Part shown: positions 23,146 to 32,000 of the stretch, piece after piece
How the letters are laid out: each line of letters opens with the position of its first letter
Position numbering within the stretch: position 1 is the stretch's first letter
Assembly: GCA_000002975.1 (NCBI GenBank)
Contig: AF165818.4
Coordinates: 1 to 32,000, forward strand
From: Guillardia theta nucleomorph
Lineage: Eukaryota > Protista > Cryptophyta
Direction: 5' to 3'
Length of the DNA: 32,000 nucleotides
Notes under the pieces: generated by a model
Database searches by the model: none
What the model was told of the DNA's origin: nothing
The model's input: the letters and a program-made list of their open reading frames with translations, nothing else
Position numbers and translations under genes: made by a program

Positions 23146-24447
23146 TTATTTATTATTTATTACCAGTTTTAATCTTATTTTACCATTAAGATTTAAAAAA
23201 ATAGAAAGGTAAATATAATCATAATAAATGCAATTTATTCCAAAATTTTTAATATCAAAAGTTCCAAAATAATTCTTAATGTTTATATTGTTAAAATATT
23301 TAAAAATAGGAGTTTTAAAATTTTCAAATTTAATATAAGATATATTAAAAAGATTAATTGATTTTTCAGATAAATAATTAAATTCAATGTTTGGAAGTTG
23401 AGGCGTAAATAATCGGCAATTGAAATAAATTTTTTCTTTATTATTTTTAAAGGACATACCAATAAAAAATTTACCGAAAAATAAAAAATTTTTTCTGATT
23501 AAATTTTTGAAATCTATTTCAATTTTCATTTGATTATCAGAATTAATATTGACTAGACTATCAACATACTTTAAAATTAAATCGAAATTAACTTTTGTAT
23601 TTTCTTTAAAGTTAATATTTTTTCGTAAATTAAAATGCTTACCTAAAATATTTTTCTTCTTTTCGTTTTTGATAATAAACTTATCAAAAAAATTGTTCAT
23701 ATAGTTTAAAAGTGACAATTTAATACAATAATCAGAATTTCTTTTTTTAAATTCTGAGTACATATCTATATTATTGTTTAAAATATTAAAAAATTTACAT
23801 TCCATTTTACTTCTTACCTGATTTTTATGTAAATACATACTTGGAATTATTTCTGATCTTGGAATAAAAGTTTCATTAATGACAAGATAATATAGATTTT
23901 TATCAAGTTTATTTGTTTTGTAAAATCGAGATTCAAAAATTTTTATTTTGTGATTAAATTTTAATATGAAATTTAAAATTTTATTGCTCATTTTTAAAGT
24001 ATCACCAAAATTTAAATTAAGACTGGATAATGTTTTTCTATTTTTTTCCAAACTATTTATTATATTCCTTTGATAAACTTGATTATCCATCATAGACAAT
24101 TTGATTCCTACAAAAATTGGTTCTTTACATATTAAAACTACTTTTCTTTTTTTTTGGTCTTCTTTAAAGTCATAATTTAAAATTTCAACATGATTTATCT
24201 TTTTATTCTTATAATTATTAAATGTTTCGTTTTTTAATACACGACTGATCTGATTGTAATCTTTTTCATTTTTTATTATTTCCGATATAGTCTTTTTTAA
24301 TTCAGTTGAAGATATATCTTCACAATTTTTATAAATAAATTCAAAATTTTTTTTTGAATTTAAATATTGATCATTATTAATTGTATAATTTTCTGAATTT
24401 TTACTTTTTTGATAAAAATTTTTAAAATAATCAAAAAACAATTTCAT
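23146..24447 (-). CDS. 433-aa hypothetical protein; possible divergent Omp85/Toc75-family beta-barrel
   Basis: The long ORF is secure. The family guess rests on a POTRA-like end (KVVLICKEP) and alternating-hydrophobic C-terminal strands, and is tentative. Confidence 0.45.
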   Translation of the reverse strand: MKLFFDYFKNFYQKSKNSENYTINNDQYLNSKKNFEFIYKNCEDISSTELKKTISEIIKNEKDYNQISRVLKNETFNNYKNKKINHVEILNYDFKEDQKKRKVVLICKEPIFVGIKLSMMDNQVYQRNIINSLEKNRKTLSSLNLNFGDTLKMSNKILNFILKFNHKIKIFESRFYKTNKLDKNLYYLVINETFIPRSEIIPSMYLHKNQVRSKMECKFFNILNNNIDMYSEFKKRNSDYCIKLSLLNYMNNFFDKFIIKNEKKKNILGKHFNLRKNINFKENTKVNFDLILKYVDSLVNINSDNQMKIEIDFKNLIRKNFLFFGKFFIGMSFKNNKEKIYFNCRLFTPQLPNIEFNYLSEKSINLFNISYIKFENFKTPIFKYFNNINIKNYFGTFDIKNFGINCIYYDYIYLSIFLNLNGKIRLKLVINNK

Positions 24448-24909
24448 ATTTAATATAAATAATATTTATATAAAGATATAATATAATTTAAACAAATTTA
24501 AAATAATTTAATATTAAATATAAAAAAAAAAATTATATGACTAGAAAAATTAAAATTTAGATGATTTAATAAAATAAAACTTACAAAAATTGAAGATTTG
24601 TCAAATAAGTTAAATAATCTTTTACAAAATTTTAGAAAAAAAGAATGTGTTTTTTAAATTATATATGATTTTGGGTGCTTTATTTAATACTAATCTATAA
24701 ATTGATTATTTTTTGAGTAAAATTAATTAAACTTGATAAAGTTTATTGAATTTAAAAATGAAAAATCAGAAAAGTTTGGATTATCCTTAAAATTTTGTAA
24801 AAATATTTAAACTTTTTTTTATTCGACCACAAATAATGATATTCTCAAAGATATCATAAATATTTAAATAGATTTTTCTTAGATATTACTAACAAAAAAA
24901 CCTCTTGTA

Positions 24910-26079: not shown

Positions 26080-26112
26080 AAGTAAGTTATTATTAAAATA
26101 TAAATTATTATC

Positions 26113-26192
26113 TAACCTTGATGGGATTCGAACCCACAATCCCTGGATTTATTAATAGAAGTCCAGTGCGTTATCCATTGCGCTACAAGGCT
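26113..26192 (-). tRNA. trnR(UCU): tRNA-Arg(UCU) with a 7-nt intron (26149-26155)
   Basis: Acceptor AGCCTTG/CAAGGTT; D arm GCGCAATGGATAACGC; anticodon arm CTGGA-CT-TCT-A[TTAATAA]A-TCCAG; T arm GTGGG-TTCGAAT-CCCAT. 73 + 7 nt. Confidence 0.93.
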
Positions 26193-27068
26193 ATGTATAT
26201 TATGCCTGGTAGAATATATATTGAATATATTATAATAAACATTAAACATAAAATTTTCAATTTATATAAATTTAATCGTAGACATTGTAAAAATACGCAT
26301 TACAATTCTAATAGAAATGTTCAATTACAAAATCAACACAATGATGTACAAAATGATATAAATAATGGTTTTTTAATTAATGATATATTAATATATCGAT
26401 ATTTAAAAGCTCTTAACTTTTTTAAAGAATTTAGTTTTAATTTTTCATCTCGTTTGTTATATTCACTTTTGCATTTAAAATTAGTTTCTAAATTAAAACA
26501 TTTTTGCTTAAATTTATTGGAAAAATTATTTATTCATTCTGAATTTTTTATAAATAATCATTTTATTAAATATAAAATTCTGTCATTGGTTTTTAGTAAA
26601 AAGATCAATTATAATTTTAGATTTTCAAAAATAAATATTCTAAAACGTTTAAAAATCAATCGTCTAGATTTTAATAAATTTACTCTAAAATTTAATAAAA
26701 CAGATAAAAAATTTTTTATTTTAGCTTTTTTAATTAATAAATATTTTATTTACTTTATTAAAATTGCAAATAAAATGGTATTTTTATCCACAAGTATTAC
26801 TAATTTTACTTATCTAGACTCCGAAAATTATAATTTTGATATAAATAAGTTAGATTTTGTAATTTTTGATTTTATCAAAAAAATAAATTGTACTAAATCA
26901 TACAAAATTCAAGATTTACAAAAAATTAATCATTTTTTTAATACCAGTTATGTAATAATGTTAATAAGAAAAATTGGATTTAAATTAAACAATCCTAAAA
27001 TATTACTCTCAGAAACACACCCATTTAAAATTTTAATTAAAAACATGTATAATTTATGTTTTTTCTGA
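26193..27068 (+). CDS. Hypothetical protein, ~291 aa
   Basis: Long ORF; the first ATG outside the tRNA is 26193 (alternative 26202). No recognisable motif. Confidence 0.65.
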   Translation: MYIMPGRIYIEYIIINIKHKIFNLYKFNRRHCKNTHYNSNRNVQLQNQHNDVQNDINNGFLINDILIYRYLKALNFFKEFSFNFSSRLLYSLLHLKLVSKLKHFCLNLLEKLFIHSEFFINNHFIKYKILSLVFSKKINYNFRFSKINILKRLKINRLDFNKFTLKFNKTDKKFFILAFLINKYFIYFIKIANKMVFLSTSITNFTYLDSENYNFDINKLDFVIFDFIKKINCTKSYKIQDLQKINHFFNTSYVIMLIRKIGFKLNNPKILLSETHPFKILIKNMYNLCFF

Positions 27069-27287
27069 TTTAAATTTAAAATAAGTTATGAATTTTTTTG
27101 TTATTCTTTTTATCTTTTTCTTTTTAGCTATAAAAATAATTTTACTCATATATTCATTTATGATGTATTCTATAAATTTACTTAATATTAAACAACTATT
27201 TAAGCTCAATTTACCAAATTTTTTATCTTTTTGAAAAAAATCTTTTATTTTATTTATTGGATAAATTGGATTAATTAATGTTAGCAT
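27054..27287 (-). CDS. Small H2A-type histone-fold protein, most like NC2alpha (DRAP1/Bur6) or NF-YC
   Basis: YPINKIKDFFQKDKKFGKL...ILSKFIEY...AKKKKIKRIT versus consensus FPxxRIKKIMQxDEExGKV...IxxxLELF... Confidence 0.65.
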   Translation of the reverse strand: MLTLINPIYPINKIKDFFQKDKKFGKLSLNSCLILSKFIEYIINEYMSKIIFIAKKKKIKRITKKFITYFKFKSEKT

Positions 27288-27320: not shown

Positions 27321-28580
27321 CTATAAATTTTTATAACTACCCAAACTCCCAACATTTAATTTTTTGGAAAAATGGCAAATAATGTTGCTCTTTAAATAAC
27401 GTAGATGATTGAATTTTTTATGACAAGATATTATAGATTGATTTAAACTTTTGAGAATTAATAGATTAATTTTTTTTTTACCAACTAAAAATTCTTTATA
27501 CTCATGTAAAAAAGTAAAGAATAATTGTATTGAATAATTATAATAGCTGTTATTAAAAACACAAGAGTTAAATAAATTATATTTAGAAATTTTTGACATT
27601 CGGTAACTAGAGAAATCATATTGTAGTTTTAAAAATAATAACTCAAGGTTTTTATATTCTATATAATTATAGTTTAACCTTATATTTTGAAAAAACTCGT
27701 CATTAAAAACAGTTATTGACTGATTGAAAAAGTTTTTTTGTTTTACTTTGCTAGATATATTTGAATAAATAATATTATTTGAGCCCGAATTAAAAGAAGT
27801 TGAACAATAATATTGATTCTTAAAAATTTTTTTTTTGTTTTTAAGTAAAATTAAATACGAATTTAAAGGCCATTTTGATTTAAGAATTAAAACTTTTATA
27901 TTTTTTTGAATTTCTGAATTAAAATTATAACAAAATGTTAAATTATTAAATCTAAAATAAACATAAGAATAAGTTAGTAAATTTATTTTGAATAAATTCT
28001 TCCATGTTTGATAAAACCCTAAAGAAACCAAAAAACAAAAGTAAGCTGGTTTTATGGTTTTACCATTACTTAGTTTTTTTATTTTATTTGTATTTAAAAA
28101 AAAATAAATTATTTTTTTAAAGTTAACGAATTTTGAAGTAAAATTGATTGTAAAATGGGTATATCTTAATAATATATTTTTATACATAAGCATAAATTCT
28201 ATTTTTTCTAAAAGTTGATAATCATTTTCAATTACATTTTTATTTAATTTTTTATATAATTTTTCATCCTGTTCTTTTAATTCTAATATATATTCAGAAT
28301 CACCATGTAAAAATTTTTTATAATTAACATCTGTCATTTTAATATTTAAGTAAGATTTTTTAGCCATTTTATTTAAAAAATTGTTAGTTATTATGGTAGA
28401 TGAAAATTTGATAAAATTATTTTTTATAAAAAATTCTTTATTATATAAAGTTGTTGTATTAAAGAATATTAATATTGTTTTTTCAATTTTAAAATTCACG
28501 TTAGAGTAAAAAAATTCAAATTTAGTTAACAAATTATCAAAACTTAATCTTTTTATGCATCTATTAGACCACATTATCAT
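27321..28580 (-). CDS. 419-aa protein; putative degenerate C-terminal half of an RNA polymerase largest subunit (Rpb1 domain 5-like)
   Basis: IYSN-x20-E...YIEYKNLELL aligns without gaps to recalled Rpb1 IYTN-x20-E...YVNYRHMALL, with other colinear blocks. First ATG at 28580 (GTG at 28595). Confidence 0.5.
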   Translation of the reverse strand: MIMWSNRCIKRLSFDNLLTKFEFFYSNVNFKIEKTILIFFNTTTLYNKEFFIKNNFIKFSSTIITNNFLNKMAKKSYLNIKMTDVNYKKFLHGDSEYILELKEQDEKLYKKLNKNVIENDYQLLEKIEFMLMYKNILLRYTHFTINFTSKFVNFKKIIYFFLNTNKIKKLSNGKTIKPAYFCFLVSLGFYQTWKNLFKINLLTYSYVYFRFNNLTFCYNFNSEIQKNIKVLILKSKWPLNSYLILLKNKKKIFKNQYYCSTSFNSGSNNIIYSNISSKVKQKNFFNQSITVFNDEFFQNIRLNYNYIEYKNLELLFLKLQYDFSSYRMSKISKYNLFNSCVFNNSYYNYSIQLFFTFLHEYKEFLVGKKKINLLILKSLNQSIISCHKKFNHLRYLKSNIICHFSKKLNVGSLGSYKNL

Positions 28581-28606
28581 ATGTTTTACTAACACTCACA
28601 CTAAGA

Positions 28607-29140
28607 ATGTATTTTAAAATTCATCATACTATTTTACTAGAAATTATTTCTAACTATTCAAACTTTAATATACTAGAATATAATAAAAATTCAATTATCA
28701 AAATTTTAATTGAGATTATAAATTTAAAGAAAAAAATATTATATGATAATGGAAAATTACTGTTTTTTTCAAATTACCACAAAAAAAAAATTATCTCCAA
28801 AATATCCAATTTTAAAAAAATTTATTTAAGTATTAACATTTTGAGAATTTATTTTCAAAAATGTTTTAAAAATATTGTGTTTCAATTTTGGAATCAAATT
28901 GACATTAAAAAAAAAATTATTATTGAAAATAATTTAAATACAATTAATATTAAATTACTTGAATTTTATTCATGTTTAACAATTATAGTAACCAATAAAT
29001 CCAATTTAAGTTTAGACTTTAATACTTTTACCTTAGATAAAATATTATTCAAGAATTTTAATGATTTTTTTTTAAAAAAAAAATTCTTTAGCGTTAATAA
29101 CAATTTTCAGATTAATTTTTTATCTAATAAATTTGTTTAA
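28607..29140 (+). CDS. 177-aa protein; putative inactive MPN domain (CSN6/Rpn8/eIF3f-like)
   Basis: FKIHHTILLEIISNY resembles FKLHPLVIVNISDHY; FQKCFKNIVFQFW resembles FKQVFKELEFLGW. Confidence 0.5.
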   Translation: MYFKIHHTILLEIISNYSNFNILEYNKNSIIKILIEIINLKKKILYDNGKLLFFSNYHKKKIISKISNFKKIYLSINILRIYFQKCFKNIVFQFWNQIDIKKKIIIENNLNTINIKLLEFYSCLTIIVTNKSNLSLDFNTFTLDKILFKNFNDFFLKKKFFSVNNNFQINFLSNKFV

Positions 29141-29212: not shown

Positions 29213-30595
29213 ATGTTTTTCAATTTATTGATCGATTCAAAATTTACCATTTCTAATAATAGTATTCCATTTTTTTTTGGAAATAATTCGAAACATAGAT
29301 GTATTCATAAAAATTTAGTTATTTATAAAAAAAACATACACATTTCTTTATTAAAGATAGAGACAAAACAGTTAGATGAGGAGTTGACATATATGACATC
29401 TAAAAAAAACTTTCATGAATTGACAGAAGGAGAAATGTTTGAAGTAATCAAATCATTCGGAATTCAAGGTTCTGCTTCAATTGAAAATACCGAAGAAGAT
29501 GATTTTTATCAAAATAATGGTCTCTCAAAAAATATACAAAAAGCCGATGATTCTGTCAGATGGTATCTTCAGCTTATCGGGAGAGTAAGATTACTTAGAC
29601 CTGACGAGGAAATTCAATTAGCAAGAGAAATATCACAATTACTTCATTGGGAACATGTAAAAATTTCACTTAGAGATAAGTTAAGAAGAGAACCGACAAA
29701 TTCTGAATGGACAGCCGCGTGTAAAGTCTCTGATGTAAGAAAATTCAGATCAATTTTACATAACGCACGAAGAGCAAAAGAAAGAATGGTAGCTGCTAAT
29801 CTAAGATTAGTTGTTTCGATAGCAAAAAGATACGTTAATAGAGGAATGTCTTTACAAGACCTTATCCAGGAAGGCAGTTTAGGATTAATTAGAGCTGCAG
29901 AAAAATTTGATAGCGAGAAAGGATTTAAATTTAGCACATATGCAACATGGTGGGTAAAACAAGCAGTAACTAGAGCAATTGCTGATCACTCCAGAACAAT
30001 TAGGTTACCGGTTCATTTATACGATACAATATCAGCGATTCGTAAAACTACAAGAAATTTAAATATCGAAATTGGAAGATCACCAACTGAAGAAGAAATT
30101 GCAAAAAGAATGGATATGTCAGTTGAAAAACTTAGAAATGTATTACAAAGTGCTCAACCTACGCTCTCTCTCGAAAGACCTTTAAAAAACGACGACGATA
30201 CTTCTCAGCTTTCTGATTTTATAGAGGCTGATCAAGAATCACCTGAAGAGCATGTAGAAAAATCAATGCTAAGAGATGATTTAGAAAATGTTATTAATAG
30301 TTTGAGTCCTAGAGAAAGAGATGTAGTCCGTATGAGATATGGATTAGATGATGGGAGAATTAAGACGTTAGAAGAAATAGGTCAAATTTTTAGTGTTACA
30401 CGTGAAAGAGTAAGGCAGATCGAAGCAAAAGCAATAAGAAAACTGAGACAACCATATAGAAGCTCTATATTAAGAGATTATGTTGCTTCTAATTCAAACG
30501 AAAAAAGCTCTGCAATAAATACATCTTACATGACAAACTCTAAACAGATAATTAAAGGAATAAATAACACAAGAGTACTAAAGAAAAAATTTTAA
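29213..30595 (+). CDS. rpoD: Plastid-targeted sigma-70 factor
   Basis: DSVRWYL, ANLRLVVSIAKRY, DLIQEGSLGLIRAAEKFD..KGFKFSTYATWW, RTIRLPVH, TRERVRQIEAKA. N-terminal extension begins MFF. Confidence 0.97.
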   Translation: MFFNLLIDSKFTISNNSIPFFFGNNSKHRCIHKNLVIYKKNIHISLLKIETKQLDEELTYMTSKKNFHELTEGEMFEVIKSFGIQGSASIENTEEDDFYQNNGLSKNIQKADDSVRWYLQLIGRVRLLRPDEEIQLAREISQLLHWEHVKISLRDKLRREPTNSEWTAACKVSDVRKFRSILHNARRAKERMVAANLRLVVSIAKRYVNRGMSLQDLIQEGSLGLIRAAEKFDSEKGFKFSTYATWWVKQAVTRAIADHSRTIRLPVHLYDTISAIRKTTRNLNIEIGRSPTEEEIAKRMDMSVEKLRNVLQSAQPTLSLERPLKNDDDTSQLSDFIEADQESPEEHVEKSMLRDDLENVINSLSPRERDVVRMRYGLDDGRIKTLEEIGQIFSVTRERVRQIEAKAIRKLRQPYRSSILRDYVASNSNEKSSAINTSYMTNSKQIIKGINNTRVLKKKF

Positions 30596-30632
30596 TACGA
30601 CACCGTGAGAATAGTGTCTGTATCCTTTAACC

Positions 30633-32000
30633 ATGTTTTTTATATTGCCGAAGCCTGCTCTTAGAGTTTACAAAAATTTTAAAAATATTGTTTTATATGA
30701 TAAAAAGAACGTCCATAATTTAAGCAAAAATGGAAAATCAGTTCAAAAATATTACAATAATATTATTTATTTATATAAAAACATTAAAGTTAAAGAAAAA
30801 TTTACCAATTTAAAAATAATTTTTTTTCTATTGCTGTTAGTCGACTTAACCATTGGTAATTCAGAAAAAATATTTTTAGATAAAAAAAAAATAAACCTTT
30901 CAATGAATGATAATACAATTGTTAAAAATGAAAATGTAAAAAATTACGATATTAAAAATAATTCAAATTTATTATTCATAGATATAACTCCTTTAAATGT
31001 GATTAATGATAAGTTTTATGAAATAATTAAAGAAATGGATCATCATGTATCTAGACCAGTAAAGGACGCTTTAATATTGTTATTAGCAACCGTGTTTGTA
31101 GTGCCGTTAATGAGAAAATTTAACACATCGCCTATCTTGGGATTTTTAGCTGCAGGATTATTTCTTGGACCTAATGGATTTGGATTGGTTCATAGGATAG
31201 GAGCATCTAAAACTCTAGCTGAGTTTGGAGTTGTGTTTTTTCTTTTTGAAATGGGATTAGAATTATCACTTTCTAGATTAAAATCTCTAGGAATGGATGT
31301 GTTTGGTCTGGGGTATCTACAATGGTTAATTACAGGTTTTATCCTAGCGTTCATATCTCTTTGCAACAATGCTTCAATTGAAATTTCATTGGTGATTGGA
31401 TTTGGTTTAGCATTATCAAGCTCTGCTTTTGTCCTTCAATTGTTATCTGAAAGAGGAGAAGTCGGTACAAGATTCGGAAGGGCATCATTTGGAATTCTTT
31501 TATTTCAAGACCTTGCTGTTGTCCCACTTTTGGTTGTTGTCCCACTTTTAGCTACCGGTGGTGGTGATTTCACAAGTCTGATGAATGCTTTAATTCTAGC
31601 AGCAGGAAAAGCTGCAGTAGCCTTAGGTATAATTTTTCTTGGAGGTAGGACTTGTCTAGAACCTGTTTTTAGATTTGGTGCTTCAGCTAAATCTCCAGAA
31701 GCTTTTGTTGCAACAATATTGGTTACAGTCTTAGCTATGTCCACACTAACTGAATCACTGGGATTATCAGATACTTTGGGAGCTTTCTTGGCAGGTGTCC
31801 TCCTTGCGGAAACTAAATATAGACATCAAATCGAAGCTGATATAGCGCCATTTAGAGGCCTATTATTAGGGTTATTTTTCATAACAGTAGGTTTCGGAAT
31901 TGATATTTCTCTAATATCGGGTAACTTTCTTACTGTTATTACGATGCTCATCACATTACTAGTAATTAAAGCATCAATTATAACAACTTTAGGCTTTTTT
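30633..32000 (+). CDS. kea1: KefB/KEA-family K+/H+ antiporter (CPA2), incomplete at the window end
   Basis: Not in the ORF track because there is no stop in the window. Frame is open from ATG 30633 (MFFILPKP...) through SPILGFLAAG, LAEFGVVFFLFEMGLELS, LALSSSAFVLQLL, GILLFQDLAVVP, LGAFLAGVLLAETKYRHQIEADIAPFRGLLLGLFF. Confidence 0.93.
   Translation, partial: MFFILPKPALRVYKNFKNIVLYDKKNVHNLSKNGKSVQKYYNNIIYLYKNIKVKEKFTNLKIIFFLLLLVDLTIGNSEKIFLDKKKINLSMNDNTIVKNENVKNYDIKNNSNLLFIDITPLNVINDKFYEIIKEMDHHVSRPVKDALILLLATVFVVPLMRKFNTSPILGFLAAGLFLGPNGFGLVHRIGASKTLAEFGVVFFLFEMGLELSLSRLKSLGMDVFGLGYLQWLITGFILAFISLCNNASIEISLVIGFGLALSSSAFVLQLLSERGEVGTRFGRASFGILLFQDLAVVPLLVVVPLLATGGGDFTSLMNALILAAGKAAVALGIIFLGGRTCLEPVFRFGASAKSPEAFVATILVTVLAMSTLTESLGLSDTLGAFLAGVLLAETKYRHQIEADIAPFRGLLLGLFFITVGFGIDISLISGNFLTVITMLITLLVIKASIITTLGFF

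Follow-up and report, generated by a model that had tools for sequence, protein, structure and literature searches.

Nucleomorphs rank among the smallest eukaryotic genomes. In known structures of RNA polymerases, region H of the largest subunit contributes helices of the clamp core and switches, which lie against the end of Rpb2, Rpb5 and Rpb6. Extra subunits derived from Rpb1 occur in plants, where NRPD1 and NRPE1 of Pol IV and Pol V have a degenerate trigger loop, are of full length and keep the catalytic aspartates. In nucleomorphs, rpa1, rpb1 and rpc1 are each annotated once in eight genomes, and the core of the nucleomorph Rpb1 is complete to its end (PMC3646058). ORFans account for 16–32% of the nucleomorph protein genes (PMC3514955), and syntenic ORFans, rpb4 and rpc3, were given their names later through profile or synteny (PMC3514955, PMC6559170).

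The window analyzed here comprises the first 32,000 nucleotides of a record of 196,216 bases (AF165818), which we take to be chromosome 1 of the Guillardia theta nucleomorph. A sequence-only reading of the window had proposed that one of its genes, orf419, is a stand-alone, degenerate C-terminal half of the largest subunit of an RNA polymerase. We compared this gene with its counterparts in other cryptophytes and with archaeal, viral and eukaryotic polymerases.

Structure and Expression of orf419

27321..28580, minus strand, orf419: single-exon gene for a 419-aa protein, counterpart of HAN_1g42 and CPARA_2gp267 (orf442)

The frame runs on the minus strand from an ATG at 28580 to a stop at 27321 and encodes 419 aa, with F, I, N, K and Y making up 54% of the residues, which bears out the earlier description of an AT-rich open frame of this length; all the peptides quoted in that description are present in the sequence. 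RNA reads were found on orf419 at low depth, mostly on the sense strand and in the same pattern as for the minus-strand neighbours, and no differing letters, gaps or 5′ joints to another gene were listed for them. One contig, which probably derives from an RNA run, stops at 28590, 10 bases ahead of the ATG. The ORF is real and transcribed, and the expression that had been proposed as a check was detected.

The catalytic NADFDGD motif, searched as DxDGD, was absent from orf419 and 15 relatives (16 of the 16 members checked), the GEP motif of the trigger loop (GEP.TQ.TL.TFH) was absent from the same sequences, and block scans of orf419 for the trigger loop scored at chance, in agreement with the earlier observation that both motifs are gone. 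Since neither motif occurs in the members checked, the protein is not catalytic and cannot synthesize RNA alone.

A Conserved Family in Cryptophyte Nucleomorphs

The neighbouring rpoD gene was used as bait to locate the locus in other cryptophytes, and more members were obtained by profile searches. Two genes flanking orf419 served as synteny markers:

28607..29140, plus strand, orf177: GINS (Psf1-like) gene, assigned via syntenic counterparts, head-to-head with orf419
27054..27287, minus strand: histone-fold gene of 77 aa downstream of orf419, with counterparts that match CBFD_NFYB_HMF

About 25 counterparts were obtained, all from cryptophyte nucleomorphs, with full-length members of 432–450 aa. 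Hemiselmis andersenii, Cryptomonas paramecium and several environmental lineages carry a same-strand ORF of 439–445 aa between the histone-fold and GINS-like genes, so the syntenic orthologues that the sequence-only reading had suggested looking for do exist. Position, strand and size are shared by at least eight lineages, and the family gene is present, mostly in synteny, in every lineage with a readable neighbourhood. Two marine lineages keep it though the neighbourhood is altered on one or both sides, and in one further cryptophyte group it does not adjoin rpoD. Among 1.8 billion representatives, a profile search found 18 matches, none longer than the family size. As a single sequence, orf419 has no Pfam, PDB or database homologue; given the syntenic counterparts, however, it is an ORFan by BLAST only.

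The named members, HAN_1g42 and CPARA_2gp267, the latter from Cryptomonas (PMC9548191), are all annotated as hypothetical. No paper naming orf419 was found in the literature, and the main text of a Phyre2 survey (PMC6559170) does not name it. We define here a conserved, previously unnamed nucleomorph family of about 440 aa.

The family alignment is almost gap-free and the length is constant. Close pairs have pN values of 0.26–0.41 against pS values of 0.47–0.67, and the family is under purifying selection and retained; constant length, expression and pN below pS agree with the earlier claim that the gene is kept as an open frame. The sequences diverge rapidly, with an identity between genera of 15–20% compared with 74% for rpoD. 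The most distant member is orf419 itself, which has 15–17% identity to the others and is missed by a family HMM built without it. Nevertheless, global alignments of orf419 with the family reached z values of 3.3–3.7, with none of 200 shuffles as good. The position of G411 holds a nearly invariant glycine across the family and the terminal G-x4-Y is shared, while the C-terminus of one member is PIGT.

Standard Homology and Structure Searches

Pfam, including RNA_pol_Rpb1_5, gave no polymerase match for orf419 and 25 members, nor did NCBIfam for the members. Sequence searches of the PDB also returned no polymerase, whether the query was the protein, the C-terminal part, any of five family profiles or either of two sub-profiles, whereas an archaeal RpoA″ used as a positive control found Pol I, II and III immediately. 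The largest-subunit HMMs of giant viruses and archaea matched nothing in the family with hmmsearch, orf419 scored at chance level against the archaeal RpoA″ HMM, hhalign against our own polymerase profiles gave no match, and a custom profile–profile alignment of the family with the polymerases reached a z of at most 1.8.

Two AlphaFold models had pLDDT values of 32 and 34, and three fold searches with them gave no polymerase hit; these blanks are uninformative because the models are very poor. The sequence-only reading had stated that it would be refuted if neither the ORF nor its syntenic orthologues matched a profile or structure of the Rpb1-family cleft domains; the profile side of that outcome was observed, while the structural models are too poor to count. 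In the ESM Atlas, the features of orf419 placed RNA_pol_Rpb1_5 (PF04998) clusters at ranks 2–3 (0.81–0.82), which is a lead only; for one orthologue, the families indicated by the features were unrelated. Across the searches, no alternative family came up a second time.

Targeted Tests of the C-Terminal Third

The protein was divided as follows according to its resemblance to the largest subunit:

27921..28580, minus strand: residues 1–220, unassigned, where bridge-helix and VHPG matches are unsupported and a jaw reading is possible, not significant
27771..27920, minus strand: residues 221–270, ambiguous, with two readings of which neither is significant, a helix following the trigger loop and the LKG strand at the end of the jaw
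27516..27770, minus strand: residues 271–355, gapless match to region H of the largest subunit (IYTN ... SFE ... ILF)
27336..27425, minus strand: residues 386–415, match to the terminal L.GV.ENI..G....GTG block, holding G411

The reference set combined 12 archaeal RpoA″ sequences with the C-terminal parts of 55 giant-virus Rpb1 sequences, with no eukaryotic sequence, and the test used an ungapped profile of 85 columns from IYTN to ILF; the limits of the blocks in these tests were chosen and tuned on orf419 itself. With all references, residue 271 was the best of 335 placements in orf419 and one of 200 shuffles scored as well, which upholds the gapless IYSN...VEILF match that had been claimed from the sequence. 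The placement ranked first with each half of the viral set, AT-rich and GC-rich, and came second, without reaching significance, when only archaea served as references; orf419 topped 139 nucleomorph ORFs for this block.

A scan along the reference revealed the residue-271 diagonal in five windows, and a second diagonal at residues 376–415 with the top score (z 5.2), corresponding to the terminal block that ends in GTG. This block, which was absent from the matches of the sequence-only reading, sits at the protein end and is preceded in orf419 by a 28-residue insertion; it was equalled by none of 200 shuffles and ranked first with either viral half, AT-rich or GC-rich, and second with archaea alone. 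The two-block score of orf419 was 9.7 compared with 4.4 ± 0.7 for 500 shuffles, none of which was as high, and with a maximum of 7.7 over 274 decoy profile windows. A chain of six blocks was matched by none of 200 shuffles and was the best among 121 nucleomorph ORFs.

The relatives behaved differently. The two-block test failed on 14 of them, the best giving 3 of 100 shuffles, and the six-block chain failed on the family profile (50 of 200). With the G. theta sequence removed from that profile, three blocks at colinear positions took ranks 1, 2 and 1 out of about 420 and two other blocks ranked 27 and 31, so that the family lends partial support; single family blocks are at noise level because a non-colinear match reaches a z of 4.7. 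The gapped version of the test is not robust: orf419 reached a z of 4.2 against one viral set, but the value was 0.5 against archaea and −1.1 against nine other viruses, and one of 38 decoys reached 4.1. A rough tail estimate based on the decoys is about 1e-4 per window; over the whole of Pfam this would give an E-value above 1. The resemblance of the C-terminal third to region H persists against independent references, shuffles and decoys, but it lies below database significance, and the orthologues fail the two-block test. Weighing all these results, we put the chance of true homology between this third and region H at a little better than even.

The N-Terminal Part and Competing Registers

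The match to the end of the bridge helix, put forward in the earlier reading, ranked 38–56 in orf419, where 300 of 300 shuffles were as good, and 80 or worse on the family; the resemblance of IKP to VHPG ranked 5 of 405. Because these two matches are unsupported, so is the layout in which orf419 would be RpoA″-like with the trigger loop lost and the jaw deleted, which is one of three registers, none of them significant. The register that pairs IKVLILKSK with IKEIINASK, with residues 221–247 as the helix after the trigger loop, ranked 1 of 400 but is not significant, and it competes with a reading of the same stretch as the LKG strand that ends the jaw, which ranked first with the archaeal profile and was also not significant. 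As an alternative layout, orf419 may start after the trigger loop and comprise the jaw and region H, an option in which the jaw reading is not significant. Four further registers recognized by eye were dropped as not significant: the family GxE with LGIE, GxE...KTP with GVPR...KTP, family positions 81–110 with the terminal block, and the N-terminus with the start of the jaw.

Neighbouring Genes and Other Loci

Counterparts of orf177 match Pfam Sld5 with E-values from 3.6e-7 to 3e-3 and the Cryptomonas counterpart has been named Psf1 (PMC9548191), so orf177 is probably GINS Psf1, and an MPN/CSN6 identity is disfavoured by both. Several lineages have the orf177 counterpart called as two separate pieces, perhaps owing to a small intron. 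The histone-fold gene at 27054–27287 has the highest RNA depth of the window. A further feature lies beyond it:

26112–26193, minus strand: tRNA gene, given no name by ARAGORN, whose sequence can be read as tRNA-Arg(UCU) interrupted by a short intron

The listed ORF at 26118–27068 wrongly starts within this tRNA gene. At 30347–30800, where rpoD has its 3′ end and the next gene begins, most reads of run X18 are on the strand that antisense transcripts would occupy, at a depth of 3–7 versus under 1. In one cryptophyte group (L007:6153-9236, L014 and L023), rpoD has an MCM gene on one side and a gene resembling TFIIIC subunit 6 on the other, flanks that indicate a rearrangement separating rpoD from the orf419 family.

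A 433-aa ORFan occupies 23146–24447 on the minus strand; the C. paramecium locus shows no such gene, and the syntenic HAN_1g36 group has been labelled outer membrane protein (PMC9548191). In the other lineages, this ORFan is separated from the gene for the poly(A)-binding protein by a DEAD-box helicase gene, as at the comparison locus L002:3849-5060; the helicase gene is missing there in G. theta (about 24450–24900). The sf3b3 gene is in three pieces in C. paramecium (L004:14453-17906), as already described (PMC3514955), and whole in other Cryptomonas. Several archaeal genomes have the second-largest subunit and RpoA′ fused in one frame (L286:2545-6828, L292:653-4936 and L300:1-3366), with a motif that reads GYNADFDGD or similar and an adjoining RpoA″ without the usual GEP.TQ pattern. 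Contigs with giant-virus-like or eukaryote-like Rpb1 genes were present in two bacterial genome bins (L287 and L297), where they are probably contamination.

Discussion

We consider it somewhat more probable than the contrary that orf419 is a non-catalytic derivative of the C-terminal part of the largest subunit of a nuclear RNA polymerase. The order of region H appears, at a borderline level, to be followed by the last 150 residues, which end where the subunit ends, and the family would be a fast-evolving yet retained descendant of that part. The link to the polymerases is favoured because the family gene is still kept where it has been relocated, indels are nearly absent and pN is below pS. 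By the defining motifs of the RpoA″ and Rpb1 families orf419 stands outside both and is at best a derived piece. As region H contacts other subunits, the protein, if the homology is real, would be a structural partner binding polymerase subunits. The most likely form, itself held tentatively and short of an even chance, is that of an additional accessory piece alongside three polymerases that are each complete. The sequence-only reading had raised the question of whether the known largest subunits are full length; completeness holds for Rpb1, and all three are annotated in the eight nucleomorphs.

The strongest competitor, to which we give a chance only moderately below even, is that the family is a conserved protein of another, unrecognized family and that the G. 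theta copy mimics the helix pattern of region H. It would account for the blank result of every standard search, for competing registers that reach similar scores, for the estimated Pfam-wide E-value and for the annotation of all three known largest subunits, and it fits a signal that lies in the one sequence that prompted the idea and mostly fails in the 14 relatives. However, the terminal block was an out-of-sample success, the family blocks ranked high at colinear places, and no search pointed twice to another family.

Within the polymerase reading, it is unlikely, though worth weighing, that rpa1 ends after the trigger loop and that orf419 is a separate Pol I chain of jaw plus region H; the same low probability is given to such a chain when part of a fourth, degenerate polymerase is included as an alternative. 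Alignments with PDB sequences give a length downstream of the trigger loop of about 430–457 aa in Pol I, about 330 aa in Pol II and 280–310 aa in Pol III, so that the family size fits Pol I. No loss of trigger loop or jaw would be required, retention in photosynthetic and non-photosynthetic lineages would be explained, region H is most divergent in Pol I among the three polymerases, and the 5′ end of orf419 has no read joint to another gene. However, an essential region H should not erode so fast and would be expected to retain LGIEA, SFE and GTG and to match Pfam, which finds none, while rpa1 is listed without comment in the eight nucleomorphs and the jaw reading is not significant. We know of no nuclear polymerase that is split after the trigger loop in this manner. 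Finally, it is highly improbable that orf419 lacks orthology to the family of about 440 aa, or that the frame is decaying and has no function, as the low identity and the leave-one-out HMM might suggest, given the shared position, strand and size, the global alignments, the common terminal G-x4-Y and the expression of orf419.

If the derivation of orf419 from a polymerase is true, a split would mean that a nuclear polymerase can work with a divided, heavily eroded largest subunit, and an extra piece would mean that a minimal nucleus retains one more Rpb1-like piece, its fourth; in both cases the result would be relevant to the question of where the enzyme is truly constrained. The unnamed conserved 440-aa family stands even if the polymerase link fails.

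Among the known systems, the archaeal RpoA″ (Rpo1C), of 350–470 aa in our reference set, is like orf419 in being a stand-alone chain that ends with region H, or what resembles it in orf419; it has an invariant trigger loop and is easily found by sequence, whereas orf419 has no such motif and only a chance HMM score. NRPD1 and NRPE1 are detectable by profile, unlike orf419, for which no matching N-terminal half is known. The C-terminal part of Rpa1/A190, Rpb1 and Rpc1 (RNA_pol_Rpb1_5) resembles, at a borderline level, the last 150 residues of the G. theta protein in order and spacing, and the part of Rpa1 after the trigger loop equals the family in size; in contrast to these subunits, orf419 is a separate gene with no Pfam match, eroded motifs, the 28-residue insertion and an ORFan-like rate. 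The ORFans rpb4 and rpc3 fill a missing subunit, whereas for orf419 all three largest subunits are already annotated; like the orf419 family, they are AT-rich, conserved in position and size, and eroded beyond the reach of BLAST.
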